A stretch of DNA of 64,000 nt, taken from IMG/VR virus record IMGVR_UViG_3300042519_004024, positions 62,001 through 126,000 of that record; one strand, given 5' to 3'. A model generated the notes under the pieces. The model saw only the letters and a program-made list of their open reading frames with translations, had not been told where the DNA came from and searched no databases. The first letter of the stretch is position 1, and each line of letters opens with the position of its first letter. The position numbers and the translations under genes were made by a program. This document shows, piece after piece, positions 3,993 through 46,524 of the stretch.

Positions 3993-6116
3993 TTATTTTA
4001 TTTTTATTTTCATTTTTGTTCCTATCTCATTTTTCTCACAAGTAATATTAAACTTGTGTTCCTCTAAAATTGCAACGCAAATATTTAACCCCAAACCTGT
4101 GCCTGATTCTGTTTGTCCTTCTTTTCTTATGTATGGTTTACGTAGGTGATCAAAATCTTGTTGTGTAATCCCTCTACCATTATCTTGAATGTATATATTA
4201 TTCTCATCAGAATAAATTTTAACGAACTTAGTGTCTGAATCATTATATTTTAAACCATTCCTAATAAGGTTATCTACCGCAGTACAGAATAACGCTTCGT
4301 TTACTTCTATTGTTGGTAAGTCCTCAATAATAACCTGACTACTATAAGCCGTAGATGATAGGTAATCAGATAGAATTGATTTTAAATTACATTCCGTTTT
4401 ATTTAAAACCACGTCTTTTTTAACTAAGTTGGTGAACTCATAAACGCCTTTATAAACTTTTTGTGAATGTTTAAGTCCTTCCTTAATCATTCTAATTGGT
4501 GCTTCTATTTTTAATGATGTAATATCTTCAGAACTTAATCTTCTTTCTAAAGAACTTAATCCTCTTGGCATGTAAGTATTTATACCTGAATGCATATCGT
4601 GTCTTAATATCTTTGCTGCGTGTTCTAAGTAAGTGTTTTTCTTTTCAATTTCTTTTCTTTGTTCATATGAATTGGTCACATCTGTTGCGATTTTCATAAC
4701 ACGATAAATTTTACCGTCTAAACCAACAATTGGGTTGTATGTTGCTTGTAGATGAACTAAAGTACCGTCTTTTTTAACTCTAGTGATTTCACCCGTAAAT
4801 AATACTCCTTCATTTAATTTTTTCCAAAAAAGTAAATATTCTTTACTTTTTGCATGATCCTCGTCTATAAAAATTCTGTGGTGTTTTCCAATTATTTCAT
4901 CCGGTGAAGAATAACCCATAGTATTTAAAAACAATTCATTAGCAAAAATAATGTTCCCTTGTAAATCAAACTCAATAACCGCATTAGATTTATTTATCGC
5001 ATTCATTCTATTACGGATCTCAACTTCTTTTCTTTTAAGTTCTGTGACATCTTGTCTAATTGATGAAAACCCTTCTAATTTACCATACTTATCAAAATTC
5101 GCTTTGATGTATGTATCAACATAGTATAACTCTCCTGACTTTCCTTTATTGGTTACAACGTCATTCCATATCTCACCTTTCATTACGGTTTCATACATCT
5201 TACCCCAATATCCATCAGGTTGTAATCCAGAGTTAACAACAATATGGTCCTTACCTTTAACCTCCTCTAAAGACCATCCTGAAACTTCTTCAAACTTATG
5301 GTTTACATAAGTTATTTTACCTTTGTTATCAGTAACTGAAACAATTGACGACTCGTTTAAAAACTTTTCAGTTTCTTTATTTCTTCTATTTAAATCGTTT
5401 CCTTCTTTAACAGAATAGGCAAACGTATATAAAGATGAAAGAAGTTGTGCAAAATCAACCTCAACTTTATCCCATTCACGAAGAGTTAAACTTTCAATAC
5501 ATATGACACCAATAGTTTCTCCTTTATATGTTATTGGAACATCCAACATTGATTTTACACCGAGTGGTTTTAAATACCCCTCAGTAAAACAAGAAGTCGC
5601 ACTATGTGTTTCAGCATCATTAGCAATAATGATTGGGTTAATTAATAGGGATAGGAAATATGGTTGGAAGTCTTTTTTATGTAGTTCAATGTTTTGGTAC
5701 CAAGTATCTTCTGATTTAATATATAATTGCTCACATATGATTGAACTTTTATCTTTATTATATAACCATATTGAACATCTATCAGCATTAATAGATTCTA
5801 TCACTTCTTTGGTTAAAACCTTAGCGCCTTCCGAAGTATTACCCTCATAAAATAAAGGATTGTGTGATTGAGATATAAGAGTTTCATTTAGTTTTTTAAC
5901 ATACTTACTCTGTTCTTTACCTTTTTTATTTCTTTTTATGTATTCAATAACAACGAAAGCAAAGAATGGTAAAAACGCCAAAAAACAAGTATAACCAAAA
6001 TACCCAATTTCGTCTATGTAATTTATAAAATGAAACACAAGTAGTGATTGGGTGGTAAAGAATGTTCCCATAATTATTACGGAAATAATCAAAGAAATTT
6101 TAGATAATTTTGTCAT
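3993..6116 (-). CDS. Sensor histidine kinase (2TM-GAF-PAS-PAS-HisKA-HATPase)
   Basis: Two N-terminal TMs; GAF; two PAS/PAC domains; H-box ILRHDMHSG; N-box DNLIRNGLKYN; G1 DNGRGI; G2 GTGLGL. Confidence 0.93.
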   Translation of the reverse strand: MTKLSKISLIISVIIMGTFFTTQSLLVFHFINYIDEIGYFGYTCFLAFLPFFAFVVIEYIKRNKKGKEQSKYVKKLNETLISQSHNPLFYEGNTSEGAKVLTKEVIESINADRCSIWLYNKDKSSIICEQLYIKSEDTWYQNIELHKKDFQPYFLSLLINPIIIANDAETHSATSCFTEGYLKPLGVKSMLDVPITYKGETIGVICIESLTLREWDKVEVDFAQLLSSLYTFAYSVKEGNDLNRRNKETEKFLNESSIVSVTDNKGKITYVNHKFEEVSGWSLEEVKGKDHIVVNSGLQPDGYWGKMYETVMKGEIWNDVVTNKGKSGELYYVDTYIKANFDKYGKLEGFSSIRQDVTELKRKEVEIRNRMNAINKSNAVIEFDLQGNIIFANELFLNTMGYSSPDEIIGKHHRIFIDEDHAKSKEYLLFWKKLNEGVLFTGEITRVKKDGTLVHLQATYNPIVGLDGKIYRVMKIATDVTNSYEQRKEIEKKNTYLEHAAKILRHDMHSGINTYMPRGLSSLERRLSSEDITSLKIEAPIRMIKEGLKHSQKVYKGVYEFTNLVKKDVVLNKTECNLKSILSDYLSSTAYSSQVIIEDLPTIEVNEALFCTAVDNLIRNGLKYNDSDTKFVKIYSDENNIYIQDNGRGITQQDFDHLRKPYIRKEGQTESGTGLGLNICVAILEEHKFNITCEKNEIGTKMKIKIK

Positions 6117-7760: not shown

Positions 7761-7790
7761 CAAAGATATGAAAATTTTATTAATTACAAA
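7761..7790 (-). promoter_or_regulatory. Bacteroidota-type housekeeping promoter
   Basis: TTTG-N18-TATCTTTG on minus strand. Confidence 0.7.
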
Positions 7791-8310: not shown

Positions 8311-8388
8311 AATTTTGTTTTTTTATTATAATAAATACTCTTGAGGTTACAGAGTTAATTAAATATTGAGCACCTCTATCTCATTTTG

Positions 8389-8461
8389 TTGTCAGTAAAG
8401 GATTCGAACCAATGACACGTCCCTAAAAAGGGATTGCTCTAACCAACTGAGCTAACTGACA
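8389..8461 (-). ncRNA. Aberrant tRNA-Lys-like RNA (6-nt anticodon loop)
   Basis: Perfect acceptor TGTCAGT/ACTGACA, canonical D arm, loop TTTTTA, two T-T mismatches in T stem. Confidence 0.7.
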
Positions 8462-8499
8462 TACCTAATAATAAAACTTTAGTTTTACATTGTCAAGTG

Positions 8500-8573
8500 T
8501 GGTCCTTGTTGGGATCGAACCAACCACCCACAGATTATGAGTCTGTTGCTCTAACCGAATGAGCTAAAGGACC
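8500..8573 (-). tRNA. tRNA-Ile2(CAT), lysidine type (elongator Met less likely)
   Basis: ACAGA-CTCATAA-TCTGT; C4:G69 and C5:G68 match TilS determinants. Confidence 0.85.
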
Positions 8574-8579
8574 TATTTG

Positions 8580-8662
8580 ATGTCAGGGAGGGATTCGAAC
8601 CCACAATGAGCAACCATCTTTAACAGATGGATTCAGTACCACACTTCTTTACACTCCTGACA
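8580..8662 (-). ncRNA. tRNA-like RNA with disrupted D arm
   Basis: Acceptor TGTCAGG/CCTGACA; T arm GTGGG-TTCGAAT-CCCTC; central hairpin CCATC-TGTTAAA-GATGG. Confidence 0.65.
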
Positions 8663-8664
8663 AA

Positions 8665-8769
8665 CAACGACTCTTCAGCATTCTACTCCCCGCAAATACA
8701 TAAATGTAACACGAAATTGTATCTAATTTAACCCTACGTTGGCGGTACGGGTACTGAAGTTCATCGTTG
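8665..8769 (-). ncRNA. Structured ncRNA candidate between tRNA-Leu and a tRNA-like element
   Basis: Nested helices CAACGAT/GTCGTTG, CTTCAGTA/TGCTGAAG, CCCGTA/TGCGGG. Confidence 0.65.
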
Positions 8770-8854
8770 GTACTCGAAGAGGGACTCGAACCCTCACAAC
8801 CCACTGGTCAACAGAGCTTAAACCTGTCGTGTCTACCAATTCCACCATCCGAGC
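8768..8854 (-). tRNA. tRNA-Leu(TAA)
   Basis: Class II cloverleaf, ACAGG-TTTAAGC-TCTGT, encoded CCA. Confidence 0.93.
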
Positions 8855-8944
8855 ATTTTAAAGAGTTATTTTCTCTTTCTTACCATAAAGATAAACAAAA
8901 CAAATAATACAAATAATATTGGTGTCATAATTTTTTAATTTTTG

Positions 8945-9029
8945 TAGTCAGGACAGGAATCGAACCTGTACTAAACCTGGTATACACCATATTAAATTAG
9001 GAACGTGTTACCAATTACACCACCTGACT
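8945..9029 (-). ncRNA. tRNA-like RNA lacking a canonical anticodon arm
   Basis: Acceptor AGTCAGG/CCTGACT, D arm GTGT-AATTGGTA-ACAC, T arm ACAGG-TTCGATT-CCTGT; centre has TGGT-GTAT-ACCA hairpin. Confidence 0.75.
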
Positions 9030-9041
9030 ATTTTTATTGTG

Positions 9042-9113
9042 CGGTCCATCCGGGAATCGAACCCGAAGCATATCCGTGACAGGGATATATGTTAGCCGTT
9101 ACACCAATGGACC
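9042..9113 (-). tRNA. tRNA-Asp(GTC)
   Basis: TATCC-CTGTCAC-GGATA, G73. Confidence 0.95.
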
Positions 9114-9175
9114 AAAAAACCACATTACAAAACCATAAAGGTACAACTCCTGCGGTTGCGTTGTTCATCATATTG

Positions 9176-9247
9176 TAGTCCGTACGGGAATCGAACCCGT
9201 GACTCTGCCGTGAAAGGGCAGCGACTTAACCCCTTGTCGAACGGACC
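9176..9247 (-). tRNA. tRNA-Glu(TTC)
   Basis: CTGCC-CTTTCAC-GGCAG. Confidence 0.95.
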
Positions 9248-9263
9248 ATCTTATTTGGTATTA

Positions 9264-9295
9264 CAAAGATATGTAAACTGTTTCAATCTACCAAA
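9264..9295 (-). promoter_or_regulatory. Bacteroidota-type promoter for tRNA-Glu onward
   Basis: TTTG-N20-TATCTTTG. Confidence 0.8.
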
Positions 9296-9301
9296 TTTTT
9301 T

Positions 9302-9457
9302 TTACTTTTTTTTGTGGGACCCGCTCCCCACTCTAAACTTGTACTTCGTTCTATTAAGCGTTTTTTTCAGTTTTTTTAACCAATCAGTATTCGTGTTAGT
9401 TTTAACAAATTTAAATCTTCCTGATTCGCAAGTTCCTGATAAAACTTCTCTCATCAT
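9302..9457 (-). CDS. Putative 51-aa basic protein in tRNA array
   Basis: Hand translation MMREVLSGTCESGRFKFVKTNTNTDWLKKLKKTLNRTKYKFRVGSGSHKKK; fills a gap between tRNAs. Confidence 0.45.
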   Translation of the reverse strand: MMREVLSGTCESGRFKFVKTNTNTDWLKKLKKTLNRTKYKFRVGSGSHKKK

Positions 9458-9479
9458 TCATTTGTATTAATTGTTTATT

Positions 9480-9552
9480 TGGTGGACACTGTGGGAATCG
9501 AACCCATACGATCTGATTGCAAATCAGTCGACCTGCCGTCGGCATCAGGCCC
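9480..9552 (-). tRNA. tRNA-Ala(TGC), slightly atypical
   Basis: Loop TTTGCAA centred on TGC; G3:U70 and A73; encoded CCA; irregular acceptor/T junction. Confidence 0.8.
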
Positions 9553-9557
9553 ATTTG

Positions 9558-9629
9558 TGCGGGTAGAATGAATCGAACACTCATCTCCACATTGGAAGTG
9601 TGGAGTAATAACCATTATACGATACCCGC
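9558..9629 (-). tRNA. tRNA-Gly(TCC)
   Basis: CCACA-CTTCCAA-TGTGG. Confidence 0.93.
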
Positions 9630-9633
9630 AAAT

Positions 9634-9849
9634 TGTGACTACTCCGTTGGGATTTGTTTCGTCACTTTATCGTGAATGGGGTGATCAAACCCACTAACAT
9701 CACGGGTGTAAGTTTGTATGTCAAACTATCTCCACAAAACATTAGTTTTTATCTCTAAAACTAAAAAAACGACTTGACACCTTGTAACCCCCCTTTTAAG
9801 TGCGTGTTACCATCCTTTCTCAAGTAGAATATACTGCTTACACTCCCGT
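9634..9849 (-). ncRNA. Two-domain structured ncRNA candidate
   Basis: ACGGG(A)GTGTAAG/CTTACACCCGT closes 9702-9849; inner GTAAC/GTTAC and TAGTTTT/AAAACTA; second domain closed by GTGAT/GTCAC. Confidence 0.6.
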
Positions 9850-9929
9850 ACTGACGGTGGGATTCGAACCCACGTTTTAAACTTACCGCTACAGGCATAG
9901 ATGATATAAGCATCCACTGGTACATCAGC
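9849..9929 (-). ncRNA. tRNA-like RNA with rearranged D/anticodon region
   Basis: Acceptor GCTGATG/CGTCAGT; perfect T arm GTGGG-TTCGAAT-CCCAC; no normal D arm. Confidence 0.65.
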
Positions 9930-9935
9930 ATTTAG

Positions 9936-10007
9936 TTGCGGGGGCAGGATTCGAACCTGCGACCTACGGGTTATGAGCCCGCCGAGCTACCACTGCTCTA
10001 CCCCGCG
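9936..10007 (-). tRNA. tRNA-fMet(CAT)
   Basis: C1xA72 mismatch, GGG/CCC anticodon stem, loop CTCATAA. Confidence 0.95.
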
Positions 10008-10360: not shown

Positions 10361-10392
10361 CAAAGATATGTAATCTATTTTAATTTGCCAAA
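10361..10392 (-). promoter_or_regulatory. Bacteroidota-type promoter of tRNA array A
   Basis: TTTG-N20-TATCTTTG, followed by a 12-bp hairpin at about 10311-10349. Confidence 0.8.
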
Positions 10393-10748: not shown

Positions 10749-10833
10749 ATGTTTTTTATTTCTACAAAGATATGTAATCACTTTTGATTTGCAAAATCTT
10801 TTTTAAACTTTTTTTACCAATATGTCAAAGAAC

Positions 10834-11882: not shown

Positions 11883-12497
11883 TTATGCATATTCTTCATC
11901 GTCAAAGTCCTCATACTCATCAAATGGGTCCTCACGCCTTTTTGTTATTATCGTCCCTTCACCATCTATTTTACCACCAGTCCCGAATACGTCTTTTGGT
12001 AATTTTCTATACTTTTCAGGTTTATAATCTTCAGGATATCTTTTTTTTTGTATAAAGTCATCCCAACCTTCACCTAATTCTTCATCTCTTCCTTTTGTTT
12101 TTGCAAATGCTTTTTTCAAATCATTAACTGAGTGTCCTCCAATCGCATCGTATGGTTCGTCCTCATCAACTTTATAGAAACCTTCTTTTTCCATTAAGTA
12201 TTCAATATCGTTAGGCAAATCACCATAACCTTCATCACGTAAAGCCATAACAATATCAAATTCACTCATCAAATTAAGGTCGTGTATATCATATTCACAT
12301 TCATTTTCAAGTATATCTCTTGCCTGTTCAATTAAATCTTGAAGTCTTTCCTCACCTCTATCGGTTTGTCCCCACTCTTCATCATCACTATAGTATGGAT
12401 CATACATACTTCTATCTTTATAGTCGTCGTTTTCTTTAATTACCCGTCTAACAATTCTTGCTAAATCTGATTCTGTTAGTCTTATTATTCTTTTCAT
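11883..12497 (-). CDS. LTESDL-leader family protein, acidic
   Basis: MKRIIRLTESDLARIVRRVIKEN. Confidence 0.85.
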   Translation of the reverse strand: MKRIIRLTESDLARIVRRVIKENDDYKDRSMYDPYYSDDEEWGQTDRGEERLQDLIEQARDILENECEYDIHDLNLMSEFDIVMALRDEGYGDLPNDIEYLMEKEGFYKVDEDEPYDAIGGHSVNDLKKAFAKTKGRDEELGEGWDDFIQKKRYPEDYKPEKYRKLPKDVFGTGGKIDGEGTIITKRREDPFDEYEDFDDEEYA

Positions 12498-12499
12498 TA

Positions 12500-13033
12500 T
12501 TATCTGTTGTTTCTACTTTTATCGGACTTTCCGTAATGGTGTCCTGATTGGTATTTATCATAACCTTTTCTTTTAAACCAAGCGGCGTCTCTAAGAGTAT
12601 TACTCGCTAAAGCATAAACGCCTAAAGCAGCAGCAATTCCCCCACTTATAAACATCGCTGCCGGAACAATTGCTAATGCCGCACCAACTGAACTATAGCC
12701 AATAATTTTATCAATAATACTTCTTATTTCATATTCATTATCACCCATTTCATTTTCATCCTCTTCCGTCAATACAGACTCCAAAGAATCTTTAACTATT
12801 GATTGTAAAGATTCAATACCGTTACTTTCTATAAAATCACGTAACATATCTTGCTCTTCAGGACTCAATTGTTCTGTAGCCTCTTTACTACTTTGTTCCA
12901 ATTCCATTTTTGAAAAATCGACATCCGATTCCATATCTTCAGATTGTGAAATCCATTCTTCTTCGTTTTCTTTAATCACTCGTCTAACAATTCTTGCTAG
13001 ATCAGATTCTGTAAGTCTTATAATTTTTTTCAT
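12500..13033 (-). CDS. LTESDL-leader family protein with hydrophobic hairpin
   Basis: MKKIIRLTESDLARIVRRVIKEN; hydrophobic SSVGAALAIVPAAMFISGGIAAALGVYALA. Confidence 0.85.
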   Translation of the reverse strand: MKKIIRLTESDLARIVRRVIKENEEEWISQSEDMESDVDFSKMELEQSSKEATEQLSPEEQDMLRDFIESNGIESLQSIVKDSLESVLTEEDENEMGDNEYEIRSIIDKIIGYSSVGAALAIVPAAMFISGGIAAALGVYALASNTLRDAAWFKRKGYDKYQSGHHYGKSDKSRNNR

Positions 13034-13063: not shown

Positions 13064-14020
13064 TTAAAAACCAAAGTTTAATCTTAAATCGTCTAATTTA
13101 ATTACCTCGGTAACTTCAACAAAATTATCTTCCATACCAACACTATCTCTTCTATCCTCCATTGTCATCTCATCATCTTCAATATATCTTACATGAATTT
13201 CAAGATTAAATGGAACAATTTCTTCATTTGATTCAATTTCATTAAAATCTTCCACTGAAAAATATTTACCTTCGTATTGACTGAACCCATCTCCAATCAT
13301 TATGTTGAAACTTTTTCTTATATTATACCTGTAATCGTCAGTTTCAACTTCTCCATTTCCATCACAATTACTACAAGTACTTGATCCATACCCATCACAC
13401 CATCCACATTCTTCATCTCCAGCACCTTCACATGATGGACATTCAAAATTACCTGTCCCACCACAATCACTACATCTATCTTCACCGGTTCCATCACAAT
13501 GAACACACTCTACCTCCACTTCAACCTCATCACCTTCATCATCTTCTTCAGTATCGGTTTCACTTCCTCTACCATCACAATAACGACATTCTTCATTACC
13601 TGATCCATCACAAGTATCACAATCTATAGTTGTTTCTCCATCACAACTACGACATTCTCGTCTACCTGACCCATCACAGTGTTCACATTGTTCATCACCT
13701 GAACCGTAACAGTAATCACATTCATTTTTAATTACTTCAGTGTCTTCATACAATTCAATAACTGCAACGTATAGGTTCATTATTATTCCTTCCATTGCAA
13801 CAGGATCCATTTTTCTATTTAAAATAAAATATGTCATAACACATACTTTAATTCTTTCTTGTGTGGAATTGACTTTTGATAATAATAATTCGGCTAAATG
13901 ATCACTTTTTATGATATTTATTATTTTTGAAATACCGATAAATACGTTTCCGTATTCGGTTTTCATTAAATTAGCTAAATTATTAGCTATTGAGTATAAT
14001 TTTTTAAATTCAGGTGACAT
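13064..14020 (-). CDS. Protein with ten CxxCxGxG zinc-finger repeats
   Basis: Ten motifs at 11-aa spacing, 5+5 around an acidic loop; no J domain. Confidence 0.85.
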   Translation of the reverse strand: MSPEFKKLYSIANNLANLMKTEYGNVFIGISKIINIIKSDHLAELLLSKVNSTQERIKVCVMTYFILNRKMDPVAMEGIIMNLYVAVIELYEDTEVIKNECDYCYGSGDEQCEHCDGSGRRECRSCDGETTIDCDTCDGSGNEECRYCDGRGSETDTEEDDEGDEVEVEVECVHCDGTGEDRCSDCGGTGNFECPSCEGAGDEECGWCDGYGSSTCSNCDGNGEVETDDYRYNIRKSFNIMIGDGFSQYEGKYFSVEDFNEIESNEEIVPFNLEIHVRYIEDDEMTMEDRRDSVGMEDNFVEVTEVIKLDDLRLNFGF

Positions 14021-14054: not shown

Positions 14055-14372
14055 CTATATTAATTTAATAAGGTCCGTTGGGTAAACTTTTTTTAGTTGG
14101 ATGTCGTATGTTTTTATAAACCAATCTAAAAGTAGGCTATCGGTTTCATAATCAAAAAATGACTTTAATTCATTATATAATTTTAAAGGACAATTTAAAT
14201 CGTCTCCGTAACCAATATGATTAAAATAAAAAAACACAAATTGTTTTTTGTTTTTTGTGTCAACTAAATAAAAGGCAATGAAATCTCCATCACATTTGTG
14301 AAGTAGTTTGAGTTTATTTAACTCAGGTAAAAACATATTAATATAATCTGAAAAAGACTTCTCTAAACTCAT
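14055..14372 (-). CDS. Hypothetical protein
   Basis: ATG 14372 overlaps upstream TGA (ATGA). Confidence 0.65.
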   Translation of the reverse strand: MSLEKSFSDYINMFLPELNKLKLLHKCDGDFIAFYLVDTKNKKQFVFFYFNHIGYGDDLNCPLKLYNELKSFFDYETDSLLLDWFIKTYDIQLKKVYPTDLIKLI

Positions 14373-14674
14373 AACTCTTGTACTTGAATCATAATCCAAT
14401 CAACTTCACCTTCAGTTAGGTTACCAAGTACGTCTTCAGTTATATGAGTATTGTATGTAATTTCCCATTCATTTTCATTTCCATGCAGCACGGCAACTTC
14501 CCATTCATTTTCATCTGAAGTATATGACGCATACCTAAACCCTTTTTCAGATATAGGACTTGGTATTTTAAACCTTACAACAGATAATCCATATCCATTA
14601 GGAAAAAATATTAATCCGTGTTGCCCATCAAATGTTGGGTGTGGTTTAAATACAATATCCTTAAATGATTTCAT
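14369..14674 (-). CDS. Hypothetical phage protein
   Basis: ORF track; TAATG coupling to upstream small ORF. Confidence 0.75.
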   Translation of the reverse strand: MKSFKDIVFKPHPTFDGQHGLIFFPNGYGLSVVRFKIPSPISEKGFRYASYTSDENEWEVAVLHGNENEWEITYNTHITEDVLGNLTEGEVDWIMIQVQEL

Positions 14675-14826
14675 TACGCGAAAGTTTTTTTATGTTTTGT
14701 TTTTCTAGTATAAAGGTTTTTTGGTTTTTCAACACGAGCAACAAATCTACCATCAAAAAATCCCGCATCTAATTGATCTTTTCTGATTTGAGTTCTTTTT
14801 ACTTTATGTTGATCGTACGTCTTCAT
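14674..14826 (-). CDS. ArfA-like ribosome-rescue factor candidate, 50 aa
   Basis: Hand translation MKTYDQHKVKRTQIRKDQLDAGFFDGRFVARVEKPKNLYTRKTKHKKTFA; promoter 14842-14872; TAATG coupling. Not in ORF track. Confidence 0.55.
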   Translation of the reverse strand: MKTYDQHKVKRTQIRKDQLDAGFFDGRFVARVEKPKNLYTRKTKHKKTFA

Positions 14827-14841
14827 CTCATTTATTTTTTA

Positions 14842-14872
14842 CAAAGATATAAATATTTTATTATATACCAAA
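14842..14872 (-). promoter_or_regulatory. Bacteroidota-type promoter
   Basis: TTTG-N19-TATCTTTG. Confidence 0.8.
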
Positions 14873-14879
14873 TTTTTTG

Positions 14880-14953
14880 TACCTCCGGCAGGACTCGAAC
14901 CTGCAAAATTCACTTTCTAAGAGTGACGTGTATACCTATTCCACCACGAAGGC
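14880..14953 (-). tRNA. tRNA-Leu(TAG) with short variable loop
   Basis: TCACT-CTTAGAA-AGTGA, A73; variable region only ATTTT. Confidence 0.88.
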
Positions 14954-14964
14954 ATTTATTTATG

Positions 14965-15036
14965 AGCTCAGGGAGGGATTCGAACCCACATACTACGGTT
15001 TTGCAGACCGAGACTTTACCAATCAGACACCTGAGC
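14965..15036 (-). tRNA. tRNA-Cys(GCA)
   Basis: TCGGT-CTGCAAA-ACCGT, U73. Confidence 0.9.
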
Positions 15037-15038
15037 AA

Positions 15039-15494
15039 TTAACGGCAGTGATGGTCTGCCGCTCTTGTTGCAATTTGATTGTCAGGTTTAATATTTGCTT
15101 TATAACCTAACGACGTTGCCCACCCAACAACGGGTTGTACAAGTTTTGAACTAAAGTGTTTTTCTTCACAGTTATAATCCAAATCTATTTCAACCTTAAC
15201 TTTTACTTTTTGAGTTAACCATTCGGCAACCTCGATTGAATAATCAGCTTCATTCCAAAGACGTGTCCATTTGTCTTTTATTTTTTTCACTTTTTGTTTG
15301 TGTAGGATGTAGTGAACACCTCTGTTTCCGTATCTGTATGCTATCACTGTAACATATACGGTACTTCTTCTATGGTTTTGTGAATCCGTTCCAATATGTA
15401 TTTCAGCCCATGGACATTCCTTTAAAACATCTAAGGTGTGTTTTACCACATCAGGGATTGCTTCACCATTAATTGTTCTAAATACTCTGTTCAT
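15039..15494 (-). CDS. RNase H-like YkuK-family protein
   Basis: IHIGTDSQ, RLWNEAD, EIDLDYN, ATRAAD acidic motifs. Confidence 0.85.
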   Translation of the reverse strand: MNRVFRTINGEAIPDVVKHTLDVLKECPWAEIHIGTDSQNHRRSTVYVTVIAYRYGNRGVHYILHKQKVKKIKDKWTRLWNEADYSIEVAEWLTQKVKVKVEIDLDYNCEEKHFSSKLVQPVVGWATSLGYKANIKPDNQIATRAADHHCR

Positions 15495-15505
15495 TATTTC
15501 TACTT

Positions 15506-15643
15506 TTATTTACTTATCAAAAAATAAGTAATAAGAATTTGAGCAATCACGGCAATTATTCTTGCTATTGTTCTTGCTAATGTCATTCGATTTTTCCAAC
15601 CTTCCAACCTTTCTTCAAATGTTGGTTTAACATTTTCATCCAT
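15506..15643 (-). CDS. Small membrane protein, 45 aa
   Basis: MDENVKPTFEERLEGWKNRMTLARTIARIIAVIAQILITYFLISK; start moved to ATG 15643 to avoid tRNA-Phe. Confidence 0.6.
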   Translation of the reverse strand: MDENVKPTFEERLEGWKNRMTLARTIARIIAVIAQILITYFLISK

Positions 15644-15656
15644 ACTATTTTTTTTG

Positions 15657-15732
15657 TGGAACCATAGGGAGTCGAACCCTAACCTCTGGATTTTCAGTCC
15701 AGCGTGACACACCACACTTACACCATAGTTCC
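15657..15732 (-). tRNA. tRNA-Phe(GAA)
   Basis: CTGGA-CTGAAAA-TCCAG. Confidence 0.92.
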
Positions 15733-16227
15733 TTATTTAACTTCAAATGCAAATTTAATCACACGTTTCTTTTTTACCGCATCATCCCAATTACCAATAA
15801 CAACACCATCTTTAATTGTGAATGCGTGTCTTGAAACAAGGATGAAGAATGTCCCAACAGGATTTTGTTTTGCAAAAGTACCAACAGTCATTTCTCGTTT
15901 AGTTACAACACCCTTAGTTTTAACTTCGTACTTTAAACTGTACATCCCCATAGTACTTTTAGTACCCATACATTTAACTTTCTTGTAGTTAATCTGTCTT
16001 CTATCTTCGGCGATTTGTTTCATTTTTAAAACAGTACCATAAGTCCCCTCACGATCTTTACGTCCAAAGTTCTCTTTAACATATTTGTGAGCGTAGTCAT
16101 ATGAAACCCCAAATGAAGATGCAAATGCTCTAACAACACAATCATTCTTCTCTCCTCTTGCGATAGGTGATTCAGCATACCCCTTAATCGCTTCTTTCGT
16201 CGTACAATATGGTAATCCTTCTTTCAT
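15733..16227 (-). CDS. Conserved phage protein, possible Cys-His peptidase-like fold
   Basis: EKNDCVVRAFA and SRHAFTIKDG; ATG 16227. Confidence 0.65.
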   Translation of the reverse strand: MKEGLPYCTTKEAIKGYAESPIARGEKNDCVVRAFASSFGVSYDYAHKYVKENFGRKDREGTYGTVLKMKQIAEDRRQINYKKVKCMGTKSTMGMYSLKYEVKTKGVVTKREMTVGTFAKQNPVGTFFILVSRHAFTIKDGVVIGNWDDAVKKKRVIKFAFEVK

Positions 16228-16274
16228 ACTGTAAAGATACAAAAACTTTTTTAATTGGCAAAATTAAAAATTAG

Positions 16275-16345
16275 CGCGCCCCCAAGGTTTCGAACCCTGA
16301 CCGATGGGTTTGGAATCCATCATGCTACCATTACACCAGAGACGC
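16275..16345 (-). tRNA. tRNA-Trp(CCA)
   Basis: Loop TTCCAAA, G73. Confidence 0.9.
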
Positions 16346-16382
16346 AAGTTGTCCGACCTAGCTCGGAACCGACATCGGATTG

Positions 16383-16455
16383 TACCCCCTCAGAGATTCG
16401 AACTCCGACCTGACACCTTAGAAGAGTGTTGTACTTCCAATTATACGAAAGGGGC
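16383..16455 (-). tRNA. tRNA-Arg(TCT)
   Basis: ACACT-CTTCTAA-GGTGT. Confidence 0.92.
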
Positions 16456-16460
16456 AAATA

Positions 16461-16631
16461 AAAGATGATGAATGACTTTATCAGGAATCCCGCTACTTCT
16501 ATCAAAGCTTCACACACCATTAGAGAGTTGGGTTGTTACATCAATACAATTAAGATTGAATACCTATCCTTAGTTTGTACCCTTGCGACACGTCTCTCCA
16601 CGCTTATCATTCTACGCTTCTTATCATCTTT
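16461..16631 (-). ncRNA. 171-nt rod-like ncRNA candidate (6S-like shape)
   Basis: AAAGATGAT/ATCATCTTT, GAATGAT/GTCATTC, AAGC/GCTT, TGGAGAG/CTCTCTA; bounded by two tRNA-Arg genes. Confidence 0.65.
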
Positions 16632-16633
16632 TG

Positions 16634-16706
16634 TACCTTCGGCGAGATTCAAACTCACATCTTGCGGGTCGTAACCGCAGGTTCTATTCTATTTAACTAC
16701 GAAGGT
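16634..16706 (-). tRNA. tRNA-Arg(ACG), variant D and T loops
   Basis: TGCGG-TTACGAC-CCGCA; D loop lacks GG; T loop TTTGAAT. Confidence 0.85.
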
Positions 16707-16710
16707 ATAA

Positions 16711-16802
16711 ATAGTTCTGGTCAACCACTCGCCACCCACCTCAGGGAATAAAGGGAATACCACCCTATACTTTGAGCCTAAGCCTTGTCCGTTGTGAACT
16801 AT
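16711..16802 (-). ncRNA. 92-nt structured ncRNA candidate
   Basis: ATAGTTC/GAACTAT closing stem, CAAC/GTTG, CTCA/TGAG, AGGG/CCCT; between His and Arg tRNAs. Confidence 0.5.
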
Positions 16803-16805
16803 TTG

Positions 16806-16879
16806 TGTGTATGATGGGGGTCGAACCCATGACCTCTTGAACCACAATCAAGCACTCTACCAACTGAGCTACATACACC
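16806..16879 (-). tRNA. tRNA-His(GTG)
   Basis: CTTGA-TTGTGGT-TCAAG; encoded G-1 opposite A73. Confidence 0.92.
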
Positions 16880-16884
16880 ATATT

Positions 16885-16954
16885 GTCCCGTGTAATGGTA
16901 TCGAACCACTCTAAAGTCGGATATGAGCCAACTTTGATCCCTGATCACACGGGA
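16885..16954 (-). tRNA. Non-canonical CAT tRNA with 8-bp acceptor and 8-bp anticodon stems (elongator Met candidate)
   Basis: TCCCGTGT/ACACGGGA; mini D arm ATC-AGG-GAT; AAAGTTGG-CTCATAT-CCGACTTT; T arm AGTGG-TTCGATA-CCATT. Confidence 0.7.
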
Positions 16955-16958
16955 GTTG

Positions 16959-17047
16959 AGGAAAACAGTGGTAACGATCCACAATCGGTTTCTCACCGAT
17001 CACATTGTTTAGCAAACAAGTCCCGTCGCCTTCAGGGATTACTTTCC
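16959..17047 (-). tRNA. tRNA-Ser(GCT)
   Basis: Loop TTGCTAA; variable arm ATCGGT/ACCGAT; T loop ATCGTTA; U73. Confidence 0.85.
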
Positions 17048-17106
17048 ATAGAGTGTGGTAGGACTGCAGTTCCTTGGGGATCCCACACTATTTATTCCCC
17101 TTTTTG

Positions 17107-17179
17107 TGTTCACGACGGGTTACGATCCCATTACCTCCGACGTATCAGATCGGCGCTCTACCAATTGAGCTACGTGAAC
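17107..17179 (-). tRNA. tRNA-Ile(GAT)
   Basis: CCGAT-CTGATAC-GTCGG; T loop ATCGTAA. Confidence 0.92.
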
Positions 17180-17185
17180 TTATCG

Positions 17186-17258
17186 CGGACAAGGAAGGGT
17201 ACGATCCTACAACCTATCGGTTAACAGCCGATTGCTCTACCAATTGAGCTACTTGTCC
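17186..17258 (-). tRNA. tRNA-Asn(GTT)
   Basis: ATCGG-CTGTTAA-CCGAT, G73; T loop ATCGTAC. Confidence 0.92.
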
Positions 17259-17262
17259 ATTG

Positions 17263-17348
17263 TGGTGGGAGAGGAGGGACTCGAACCCCCAAGGTCTTTC
17301 GACGACAGATTTACAGTCTGCTGAGCCAACCAATTGCTCAACTCTCCC
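17263..17348 (-). tRNA. tRNA-Tyr(GTA)
   Basis: GCAGA-CTGTAAA-TCTGT, variable arm, encoded CCA. Confidence 0.95.
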
Positions 17349-17354
17349 AGTTTA

Positions 17355-17477
17355 GGAAAGGGGAAGATGGTTCTGTGGACATCCCCTTTTATGATTGGCG
17401 TTACTATGACAGTTAAAACTCCGACATAACCACGACTACTGACACGTTAACGTTATATCATTCCCCAATCAACCTTT
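17355..17477 (-). ncRNA. Structured ncRNA candidate between tRNA-Val and tRNA-Tyr
   Basis: TGATTGG/CCAATCA domain then AAAGGGGATG/CATCTTCCCCTTT hairpin. Confidence 0.5.
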
Positions 17478-17478
17478 G

Positions 17479-17552
17479 TACACCCTACAGGGATCGAACC
17501 TGTGACCTGTTGTATGTAAAACAACCGCTACTACCAGCTGAGCTAAAGGTGC
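17479..17552 (-). tRNA. tRNA-Val(TAC)
   Basis: GTTGT-TTTACAT-ACAAC. Confidence 0.92.
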
Positions 17553-17554
17553 GT

Positions 17555-17770
17555 TTATGATGTTATCATTTTAATACTTTCAATTGTGGTAGAGTACATT
17601 CCTTGTTCAATGTAAGGTTTACTATCTTTTAATAGTTTCAAAACAATTTCTGTTGCCTCGTTTTCGGTTTTACCTTGTTTAACCAATCTTACGATTGCTT
17701 TTTCACATTCTTCACCAACCTTAACCATTCCACTTGGAAGTCCTTTTTTAATCTTCTCTACTTTTTTCAT
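17555..17770 (-). CDS. Hypothetical early protein
   Basis: 71 aa directly after promoter TTTG-N19-TATCTTTG (17775-17805). Confidence 0.7.
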   Translation of the reverse strand: MKKVEKIKKGLPSGMVKVGEECEKAIVRLVKQGKTENEATEIVLKLLKDSKPYIEQGMYSTTIESIKMITS

Positions 17771-17813
17771 AGTACAAAGATAATACTTTTTTTTAATCTA
17801 CCAAATTTTTTTG

Positions 17814-17888
17814 TGATCCCGGTGAGGCTCGAACTCACGACCCCTCCATTAAAAGTGGAGTGCTCTAAACCAACTGAGCTACGAGATC
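17814..17888 (-). tRNA. tRNA-Lys(TTT)
   Basis: CTCCA-CTTTTAA-TGGAG. Confidence 0.95.
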
Positions 17889-17948
17889 TTCTGTTTGTCA
17901 TTCTTGTCACTTTCCATGTTACTTGTTTTTAATTGTTTATTTATTTAG

Positions 17949-18022
17949 TCTAAGTGGCAGGGATCGAACCTGCGGCCTGATGCTCCCAAAGCACCCGCTC
18001 TTCCAAACTGAGCTACACCTAG
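17949..18022 (-). tRNA. tRNA-Pro(TGG)
   Basis: GGTGC-TTTGGGA-GCATC; C1:G72. Confidence 0.95.
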
Positions 18023-18028
18023 TTATTG

Positions 18029-18117
18029 TGGAGGAAGAAGTAGGTGTCGATCCCAATACCCGCAAAGGTACCGCCCGTTTTCAAGACGGGGTCACAAGCC
18101 GTTGTGATTCATCTTCC
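18029..18117 (-). tRNA. tRNA-Ser(TGA)
   Basis: CCCGT-CTTGAAA-ACGGG; variable arm; T loop ATCGACA; U73; encoded CCA. Confidence 0.87.
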
Positions 18118-18123
18118 TTATTG

Positions 18124-18195
18124 TTGTTCCCCAAGGGTTCGAACCTCGATTCCATGGACCAAAACCATGTGTCCTGCCGATTAGACGAGGGAACA
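18124..18195 (-). tRNA. tRNA-Gln(TTG)
   Basis: CATGG-TTTTGGT-CCATG. Confidence 0.93.
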
Positions 18196-18238
18196 TTAAT
18201 GAAGCCAATATGTCAAAGAACTTTTTCTTTTTTGTTTG

Positions 18239-18311
18239 AGGTTCCTATCAGGTTCGAACTGATGACTCCGGGTTACAAAGCCGGGATATTACCAAACTAT
18301 ACTAAGGAACC
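18239..18311 (-). tRNA. tRNA-Thr(TGT)
   Basis: Loop TTTGTAA, C31xC39 mismatch, U73. Confidence 0.88.
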
Positions 18312-18324
18312 AAATTTTTGGGTA

Positions 18325-18357
18325 TAAAAAAACCCGAACTTTTTGGGTTCGGGTCTT
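18325..18357 (-). terminator. Intrinsic terminator / possible attenuator before tRNA array B
   Basis: ACCCGAACC-CAAAA-AGTTCGGGT plus T-run. Confidence 0.8.
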
Positions 18358-18388
18358 ATATTTCTTTTATATTTTTAGTTAATCTCTA

Positions 18389-18499
18389 TCAACTCATAAA
18401 TGAAAATGCCCTAACTCGCGACTTAAGCGTACGATACACATTGAACGACCACTGAATGCTCGGGTTACAAATGTTCATATGTCTATTAGTTGTTTTCAT
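18389..18499 (-). CDS. Putative 36-aa leader peptide
   Basis: Hand translation MKTTNRHMNICNPSIQWSFNVYRTLKSRVRAFSFMS; late motif 18506-18512; several GC-rich codons (TCG, CGA, AGG, ACG, CCG). Confidence 0.55.
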   Translation of the reverse strand: MKTTNRHMNICNPSIQWSFNVYRTLKSRVRAFSFMS

Positions 18500-18617
18500 C
18501 TTGTTATAAATATATCGTTATTTCTAAAAGTTTTAATTCTTATACAAATTTAGTTATTTTTTTCTATTTGAAAAGTGTTTTATTGTTTTTTTTATATTTA
18601 TTTAAAAAATATTTCTT

Positions 18618-20003
18618 GTGGTAGAAAAAAAGGCTTTAAATGAAGAATTAAAAAGAATTAAACAATTAATGGTATATGATATGAATTACCATAATTCTAA
18701 AATTTATGAGGATGTTGTCACATCTTCTAAAGTCGGTCAATGTAAAATTACCCCAAATCCAATTCAGGAAAATGAGGTTGCGATTATCTCCTTTGATAAA
18801 AACAAATCACAATTTAGAGTTGGTATGAAATTATTTTTTGGATCCGCTAAAACTGAAACTCAATTAAAAAATGGTTTTGATAAACTCATTAATTTAATTT
18901 TACAATACCCTGATCTTGATGAGGGAATAAAAAATAAAATTAAAAGTGGTGAATTTGCTTTAGGTATACCTACAGTATTAAATGTTATTGGGTCGGCAAG
19001 TAGCGTAAGGGGGGTTCCTGTTATGCCAACAATAACTAATAATAAAGCATCAACAAAAATTACATCAATTAACGTCAATTCTTTTGCGTCAAATATTAAT
19101 AGAACCGCAGATAATTACAAAACACTTAAAGATGATGAAATTAATAACGGATATGCCACAGGACGTATACAAACAATAACTGATTTTATAAAGTCAGGAA
19201 AATTAACAAAAATACAGTCAGGTATGGATGTTGAGGTTAAAAACAATGTTGCGGTTATTACCGATACGGGTGGTTGTGACGATGAGCATAGAAATACCGA
19301 CATATACCCAAATGCTGGACAATTTGCTCTTTTGGATATGTATGTCACTTTATCTAAAAAAATAATTGTCGCCACTAACCCATCAACTTGTATTAATAAG
19401 TTGACAATTAAAATTGGTTATGATAAAGATCTTGCAACTACTGAACTTCAAAAACACGAGTGTGATTTTGGAATTTTTAATGTATATGCAAATGATGTTT
19501 TTGTTAAAACTATTAATTTAAATAATTATGTTTTTGATACCGGTTTAAGAACTAGAGAAACTAATGTTGATGGATTAAAAATAACTGATTTTACTGAAGG
19601 TAGGGAATCTGATGGGTTAACTGGAGGTACTAGATTTTATACCATAACAATAAACCAAAATGATAAGTTATGGAATGATATTATGGCAAACGCACCTAAA
19701 TTTGGTAACCATATTATGTTATCATATAAAGGTTTCCCTAGCGCTTGGTACGCCGGTAAGAAGATTTACGCCCAAGGAGCTAGAAACAGTAAAACACTTG
19801 GACCAGCAAAAAAATGGGATGGTAGTGATGCAGAATCACATGCGTCAGCAGTTTATTTAGATATTACTCTTTATAGAAAAGATAAAACAAAGGACAATAT
19901 TAAAGGTTGGACAACAGCAACTGCAAGAGGTGTTCAAATGATTACAATTGCTGACTTAACACCTTGTTCAAAATCTAGTGATAAGAGAATAGTAATATCT
20001 TAA
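18618..20003 (+). CDS. Hypothetical late protein, probable virion-associated
   Basis: 461 aa; leader ALNEELKRIKQLM; TATTTAT at 18595-18601. Confidence 0.75.
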   Translation: MVEKKALNEELKRIKQLMVYDMNYHNSKIYEDVVTSSKVGQCKITPNPIQENEVAIISFDKNKSQFRVGMKLFFGSAKTETQLKNGFDKLINLILQYPDLDEGIKNKIKSGEFALGIPTVLNVIGSASSVRGVPVMPTITNNKASTKITSINVNSFASNINRTADNYKTLKDDEINNGYATGRIQTITDFIKSGKLTKIQSGMDVEVKNNVAVITDTGGCDDEHRNTDIYPNAGQFALLDMYVTLSKKIIVATNPSTCINKLTIKIGYDKDLATTELQKHECDFGIFNVYANDVFVKTINLNNYVFDTGLRTRETNVDGLKITDFTEGRESDGLTGGTRFYTITINQNDKLWNDIMANAPKFGNHIMLSYKGFPSAWYAGKKIYAQGARNSKTLGPAKKWDGSDAESHASAVYLDITLYRKDKTKDNIKGWTTATARGVQMITIADLTPCSKSSDKRIVIS

Positions 20004-20127
20004 TTTTTTTTATTACTATAATGTATTTGTTCTTCCTCTAATCTACGTAAAAAAACGTAGTATTCTTCCGATTCTATAAATTCATTGTGGATTAATTCTA
20101 ATATTTCTTCCATTACTATTGTGTTAG

Positions 20128-20201
20128 TGATCCGCTCAGGATTCGAACCTGAGACCTACTGCTTAGAAGGCAGTTGCTCTATCCAGCTGAGCTAGCGGAC
20201 C
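20128..20201 (-). tRNA. tRNA-Arg(TCT), second isolated gene
   Basis: ACTGC-CTTCTAA-GCAGT; canonical cloverleaf. Confidence 0.95.
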
Positions 20202-46480: not shown

Positions 46481-46524
46481 TGATACAAAGATATATTCTT
46501 TTTTTGAATCTGCCAAACATTTTA

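Follow-up and report, generated by a model that had tools for sequence, protein, structure and literature searches.

The closest described counterparts of the locus reported here are the small rescue proteins ArfA (YhdL) of Gamma- and Betaproteobacteria and BrfA of the Bacillus subtilis group. Both factors act in a species-specific way. About 46 to 48 residues of ArfA are ordered on the ribosome, while an ArfA of 40 residues is inactive (PMC8012679). Residue F25 and the segment Q27-E30 make the contact with RF2, and the mRNA entry channel is occupied by the basic tail, which carries a KH motif (PMC8012679). BrfA contributes a strand to RF2 and inserts a KH motif into the mRNA channel (PMC8012679). 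In both arfA and brfA a terminator precedes the stop codon, and the proteins are produced from non-stop messages (PMC8012679). In a survey of 15,259 genomes (2024), ArfA was confined to the Gammaproteobacteria, some Betaproteobacteria and the B. subtilis group, and not one of 1,956 genomes from the FCB group contained arfA (PMC11633108).

Gene g10 of Citromicrobium phage RXM has been published under the name ArfA on the strength of its annotation alone (PMC8953757); it scored 29.6 bits against the Pfam ArfA model. A search with E. coli ArfA revealed true homologues in cultured phages, among them Salmonella phage Arash and Pseudomonas phage pf16. The Arash homologue, gp99c (L184:3917-4141), lies among tRNA genes and is annotated as 'ribosomal protein L2'; counted from an internal Met it scored 69.6 bits. 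In pf16 (L185:3995-4138) an unannotated ArfA ORF of 47 amino acids, which overlaps pf16_199 on the opposite strand, reached 72.5 bits. With RXM, Arash and pf16 as precedents, phage-borne ArfA is not new as an annotation. No functional study of a phage-borne ArfA was found in the literature.

The window analysed here is a stretch of 64,000 nucleotides, bases 62001-126000 of a 213,924-bp IMG/VR virus record. The initial annotation had described in it a 50-aa ArfA-like rescue peptide beside a tRNA array, with its own promoter and with TAATG coupling to the next gene. The ORF was recovered exactly as quoted, and the features of the region are the following.

14674..14826, minus strand: ORF of the ArfA-like peptide, with ATG start, 50 codons and TAA stop
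14728..14745, minus strand: codons F28-V-A-R-V-E33, aligning with ArfA F25 and the RF2-docking strand Q27-E30
14686..14727, minus strand: codons of the Lys/Arg-rich tail, residues 34-47, with K44-H45 at 14692-14697
14842..14872, minus strand: candidate promoter TTTG-N19-TATCTTTG of the Bacteroidota -33/-7 type, proposed from pattern excess and conservation in relatives
14672..14676, minus strand: TAATG stop/start overlap, TAA at 14676-14674 and ATG at 14674-14672 sharing one base
14369..14674, minus strand: downstream 101-aa ORF, phrog_4074 (function unknown), a syntenic partner in one broad phage lineage
14879..15036, minus strand: tRNA-Leu(UAG) and tRNA-Cys, directly upstream of the ArfA-like gene
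14879..20201, minus strand: upstream tRNA cluster of 16 genes with interspersed small ORFs
15039-15494 and 15733-16242: small ORFs within the upstream tRNA cluster, RNaseH_like and a 169-aa ORF, respectively
8388..10007, minus strand: downstream tRNA cluster of 8 genes

The overlap with the start of the 101-aa ORF is real in this genome; in close relatives it was not kept, and a gap of 12 nt separates the two genes. The position beside the tRNA array was also borne out. The ArfA-like gene is flanked by two clusters that comprise all 24 tRNA genes of the 214-kb record, and a spacer of 52 nt separates it from tRNA-Leu(UAG) at 14879-14953. Neither a tmRNA nor a release-factor domain nor RtcB was detected in the phage. 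Lacking both a tmRNA and a release factor, it must rely on host factors. A protein with SprB repeats is encoded in the phage, and this, together with the promoter type, indicates a host from the Bacteroidota. DNA of the phage was present in at least 18 metagenome runs from lake water.

Several further observations were made in the surroundings of the gene. ARAGORN reported two genes of the downstream tRNA cluster, at 8388-8461 and 8944-9029 (minus strand), as 'tRNA-???' and gave the anticodon as two bases (tt), a sign that the anticodon loop may be unusual. Calls of this kind were also obtained in L069-L071, which are related viral loci, and at L184:2999-3072 in Salmonella phage Arash, where the gene is annotated as tRNA-Asn. 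The RNaseH_like ORF (PF04308; 15039-15494, minus strand) lies between tRNA genes, was covered by contigs from three RNA-library runs, and has remained syntenic with the ArfA-like gene throughout the phage lineage. An RNA ligase (PF09414, 55.6 bits) was found outside the window at G000:C1:41792-42379, at a distance of about 20 kb to the tRNA region. The second gene downstream of the ArfA-like one (13064-14020, minus strand) encodes a protein of 318 amino acids with dense repeats of the CxxCxGxG type, resembling the zinc finger of DnaJ. This protein had no PHROG match, while precomputed Pfam data listed DnaJ_CXXCXGXG, at faint to weak level, for the equivalent in relatives. The adjacent ORFs 11883-12497 and 12500-13033 (minus strand) share a near-identical N-terminus of about 23 residues (MK[RK]IIRLTESDLARIVRRVIKEN), which is followed by divergent acidic tails. 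At 3993-6116 (minus strand) a GAF-PAS-HATPase sensor kinase of 707 amino acids is encoded. The record is classed as viral ('provirus'), and the kinase may represent either phage-borne signalling or flanking host DNA.

For the promoter ascribed to the gene, a candidate site was found. A sigma-70 scan detected no promoter in the 52-nt spacer upstream of the ArfA-like gene. The candidate site in the spacer follows the pattern TTTG-N19-TATCTTTG, which is the -33/-7 pattern of Bacteroidota promoters. This pattern occurred at 15 sites in the window versus 5.3 expected, and none of 100 shuffles reached 15; 13 of the sites were located on the coding (minus) strand. The -7 box upstream of the ArfA-like gene was conserved in relatives. 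One sub-lineage carries the gene 24 nt after the tRNA and without a -7 box. An extended consensus, TTTGG-A-ATT ... TATCTTTG, was noticed in promoter-like sites on the minus strand at 7761-7790, 9264-9295 and 10361-10392, and again at 10765-10795, 17775-17805 and 46486-46517. These sites are probably phage promoters read by a host sigma factor. Contigs from metatranscriptomes covered the adjoining genes and tRNAs, and the 50-aa ORF lay outside their span.

The similarity to ArfA was evaluated at the level of single sequences and of profiles. The 50-aa protein matched only one Pfam family, ArfA (PF03889). The alignment extended over the full model (1-44 of 44 positions), but the score of 13 bits (E = 0.071) was below the gathering cut-off of 25.5 bits. 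The best E value for this model among 28 close homologues was 0.01, and two clusters of close homologues carry the label 'ArfA' in IMG. In a six-frame search of the 214-kb record the 50-aa ORF was the only ArfA match. When a profile of the 28 homologues was compared with 177,635 sequences of solved structures, the six best matches were all E. coli ArfA (E = 0.003). In the opposite direction, a six-frame search of five arfA-bearing genomes with the profile of the phage clade did not retrieve arfA at E <= 1.

A comparison set was assembled from the E. coli arfA sequence, which was fetched, and 32 diverse true ArfAs from GTDB genomes. Alignment of the phage clade with the 32 ArfAs by hhalign gave a probability of 93.1%, P = 3.3e-7 and a score of 36.3 over 43 columns with 35% identity. 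For the alignment of 85 family members against ArfA, 84% and P = 7.6e-6 were obtained. Shuffling the ArfA columns 150 times while keeping the composition resulted in a mean score of 9.6 (sd 2.2) and a maximum of 20.2, so that the real score of 36.3 was about 12 sd above these controls; a reversed alignment scored 13.1. The N-terminal and middle part alone reached P = 5e-4 and the tail alone P = 4e-5, and each of them surpassed all of 100 shuffles. Since both parts were significant separately, the likeness to ArfA amounts to more than a basic tail. The profile comparison, which the initial annotation had named as a check, thus spoke for a relationship.

The E. coli ArfA sequence given in the initial annotation equals residues 1-45 of the real protein. 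Among the matches which it had listed, D-x2-F-x2-RVEK-x-K, Y-x-RK-x-KH and QI hold, while 'Y-QH' is obtained only with a shift of one residue. As in ArfA, an N-terminal segment is followed by D-x2-F-x2-R-V-E-K-x-K and then by Y-x-R-K-x-K-H in the basic tail. The active part is of similar size in both proteins, and a length of 50 amino acids is enough to span the ordered 46-48 residues of ribosome-bound ArfA. Within the phage clade, conservation falls on D25, F28, R31, E33, K36, Y39, R41, K42, K44 and H45, and E. coli ArfA has the identical residue at each of these positions. In the close homologues F28 and R31 were invariant, E33 was near-invariant and V32 was conserved, and these residues align to ArfA F25, R28, E30 and V29, respectively. 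In the tail, K42 and K44 were invariant and H45 was near-invariant. Residue A21 of the phage clade aligns with ArfA A18, a position needed for RF2 activation; most members of the wider family have Q there.

Unlike ArfA, the phage peptide lacks the KGKG[SA] loop, a hairpin in the gene and a hydrophobic C-terminal extension. The loop, which is located between the strand and the Y-x-R-K tail and the lack of which had been pointed out correctly in the initial annotation, was present in all 32 true ArfAs and is missing from the 50-aa protein and its family through a deletion of three residues. The segment that plugs the mRNA channel is consequently shorter by three residues. The ArfAs of Arash and pf16 resemble the window peptide in being phage-borne and, at 47 amino acids, in ending at a normal stop codon shortly past the basic tail. 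They and the ArfA of RXM differ from it in scoring above the Pfam cut-off, in having kept the K-G-[KR]-G-S loop and in belonging to phages of Proteobacteria.

Structure prediction with AlphaFold2 (pLDDT 83) resulted in a helix from residue 6 to 20, with the remainder extended. This helix does not coincide with the ArfA helix at residues 15-24. BrfA also has an N-terminal helix, and the BrfA chain 6SZS was absent from the solved-structure matches at E <= 10. A Foldseek search of the PDB with the AlphaFold2 model gave no match. A complex predicted for the peptide with RF2 from a Flavobacteriales MAG scored 0.17 versus a mark of 0.32, a result that counts neither for nor against binding.

The description of the peptide as ArfA-like could therefore be upheld as a remote profile similarity, with E. 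coli ArfA as the top match among solved structures, but not as membership in the Pfam family, given the score of 13 versus 25.5 bits, the missing loop and the empty reciprocal search. Judged by its sequence, the 50-aa peptide is a remote relative of ArfA that probably works in an ArfA-like manner and stands outside the curated ArfA family.

The likeness to ArfA might instead be convergent, and the peptide might be a generic small basic protein that binds nucleic acids, for instance a chaperone of RNA or tRNA or a peptide that binds DNA, or else a functionally unrelated protein of the DUF7230 type (PF23876). It is short and rich in Lys and Arg, the position in a tRNA array would also suit tRNA binding, the E values of single sequences against ArfA were just 0.01-0.07, and the reciprocal search did not lead back to arfA. 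Moreover, DUF7230 was matched more often than ArfA, with matches below its cut-off of 27 bits in 23 of 85 family members (best E = 4.5e-5) as opposed to 4 of 85 for ArfA, likewise below the cut-off, and by language-model features an Atlas cluster of 48-aa DUF7230 proteins was a near neighbour. However, neither the window protein nor any other part of this phage matched DUF7230, and no match above the cut-off occurred in 401 Bacteroidota genomes. The sole DUF7230 member in the Atlas with a phylum on record was from the Actinomycetota, and no mention of DUF7230 was found in the literature. The shuffles that preserved composition never came near the real profile score, and the conserved positions are functional residues of ArfA, in the same order and with near-identical spacing. 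A convergent resemblance is therefore regarded as unlikely.

The 3' end of the gene was inspected with regard to the control by tmRNA that is typical of ArfA. The phage ORF ends at a normal stop codon five residues beyond KH, and no stable structure was found at this end (z = +0.76). Residues beyond K-H-K-K vary freely among the homologues, so that there is no conserved C-terminal extension. With an ordinary stop, no hairpin and no hydrophobic extension, the phage gene would lack the tmRNA-dependent control of ArfA, and the peptide would be produced whether or not tmRNA is active. The constitutive production that had been proposed fits the sequence in these respects, and short ArfAs with normal stop codons also occur in cultured phages.

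Three chromosomal members of the family possess a strong terminator-like hairpin inside the ORF, right past the basic tail. They are located at L010:1998-2228 (76 amino acids), L040:3977-4228 (83 amino acids) and L180:1403-1615 (70 amino acids), and in each case an in-frame stop codon follows 4-24 codons past the hairpin. In having a terminator before the stop codon, these three members resemble arfA and brfA. Hairpins within the ORF are a small minority, and 34 of 36 examined cellular loci end normally. The hairpins of the three members offer an independent and suggestive clue to function.

The distribution of the family was determined by an exhaustive profile search, which yielded 93 clusters at 50% identity; nearly all of the proteins were 42-80 amino acids long. 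The consensus of the family is R-x2-Q-x-E-Q-G-F-F-D-G-R-F-x2-R-x-E-x-S-K-K-x-Y-x-R-K-x-K-H-K. In contrast to ArfA, the family occurs in Bacteroidota and their phages. A motif scan of 185,579 species genomes found 37 loci, of which 35 were in MAGs of Bacteroidota, including Crocinitomicaceae and other Flavobacteriales, Saprospiraceae, Chitinophagaceae and Bacteroidales. The two others were in a bin labelled Chlamydiales and in an unclassified bin ('uncultured bacterium'). The Chlamydiales-labelled member (L030) groups with a viral copy in the tree, and its contig is therefore probably mis-binned or viral. One Bacteroidota locus is situated on a chromosome of 4.47 Mb. The neighbours of the cellular loci were ordinary and varied cellular genes, without tRNA arrays. 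A chromosomal member at L043:2868-7380 is flanked on one side by a WYL/WCX regulator and on the other by a reverse transcriptase, which is followed by a 'HisKin-conflict' protein, and this region has the look of a defence island. The occurrence in Bacteroidota is sporadic, with the family present in 3 of 400 other sampled genomes. ArfB was missing in five of eight carrier genomes versus about 27% expected, which is a weak trend given the incompleteness of MAGs.

In IMG/VR more than 55 viral contigs, the largest of 304 kb, carried the family, and a collection of 50,697 cultured-phage records contained no relatives of the 50-aa family. In the tree, the clade of the window protein, which comprises 15 distinct sequences, was exclusively viral and strongly supported, and its long stem emerged among cellular clades. 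Copies from viruses and from cells were interleaved, and supported branches forced at least three changes of label; with so few alignment columns the tree gives neither the age nor the direction of transfers. None of the cellular genomes searched contained the AGFFDGRF variant of the phage clade. At about 30 of 58 viral loci, including copies merely 50-55% identical to that of the window, tRNA genes were present within 5 kb. Across the tRNA-linked viral loci the RNaseH_like ORF, the 169-aa ORF and the 101-aa ORF were kept as neighbours. Much of the link to tRNA genes thus goes back to synteny that is shared within a single broad lineage of phages, and it does not count as evidence obtained several times independently.

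We hold it to be somewhat more probable than its opposite that the peptide is a rescue factor that recruits a release factor and, being translated from an ordinary message, is not repressed by tmRNA; this view is derived from sequence comparison. Once a ribosome has run to the 3' end of a truncated mRNA, the entry channel for mRNA in its 30S subunit is empty, and the KH-bearing Lys/Arg-rich tail would insert there. The segment F28-x-x-R-V-E would add a strand to the domain II/IV sheet of a class-I release factor of the host, probably RF2. The GGQ loop of the release factor would then hydrolyse the peptidyl-tRNA, and the ribosome would be recycled. During infection the peptide would act as an always-on rescue factor within a phage translation module of 24 tRNA genes. 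Ribosome binding, the recruitment and identity of the release factor, the timing of expression and the benefit to the phage are points that we infer. Hypothetically, its purpose might be to offset defences that cleave tRNA or mRNA.

A different function would result if the tail plugged the empty mRNA channel without productive activation of a release factor and thereby blocked tmRNA-SmpB or ArfB, which might stop the tagging of phage proteins or modulate host translation. The basic KH tail was the best-scoring part of the alignment, and the KGKGS loop and a conserved equivalent of A18 are missing in the wider family, both of which would agree with a plug; the predicted complex with RF2 gave no answer. 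However, the segment with F and R-V-E that would contact RF2 is conserved like the tail and by itself surpassed all shuffles, and terminators within the ORFs of chromosomal members suit a back-up rescue factor better than an inhibitor. We therefore consider a mere plug quite improbable.

The rescue factor might also employ RF1, or either release factor as ArfT does, and not RF2 specifically. The RF2 specificity of ArfA rests on hydrophobic contacts that are possibly different in Bacteroidota (PMC8012679), and the N-terminal part of the peptide is the least ArfA-like. Yet F28, which corresponds to the contact residue F25 by which the specificity for RF2 is explained, was invariant, and neither ArfT nor BrfA similarity surfaced in the Pfam and solved-structure searches. 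Little weight is accordingly given to the use of RF1 or of both factors.

A chance origin of the ORF within a tRNA-array spacer is practically excluded and was rejected on the pattern of conservation, for in spite of its shortness and of an AT-rich region crowded with RNA genes the ORF showed a median pairwise dN/dS of 0.09 (18 distinct alleles, 80 pairs), indicating strong purifying selection, has 31 clusters of close homologues, with 93 clusters counted for the family, and was found as the exact 50-aa protein on 17 contigs of up to 287 kb.

It is conceivable, if rather doubtful, that Bacteroidota own an unrecognised rescue system of the ArfA type which phages captured several times, and that one long-lived lineage of large phages keeps it always on in its tRNA array, where it would free ribosomes at times when host shut-off or host defences give rise to non-stop complexes in large numbers. 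The defences hypothetically concerned would include anticodon nucleases, mRNA interferases and defence transcripts without a stop codon. If the peptide works as proposed, release-factor-dependent rescue by an ArfA-like factor would extend to Bacteroidota and so beyond its known range, and both the KGKGS loop and the non-stop autoregulation would be shown to be dispensable for ArfA-type function. True ArfA and the remote family are both found in unrelated large phages, twice beside tRNA genes. This suggests that the need to rescue stalled ribosomes arises again and again in the course of infection, an idea that can be tested in the cultured phages Arash and pf16.
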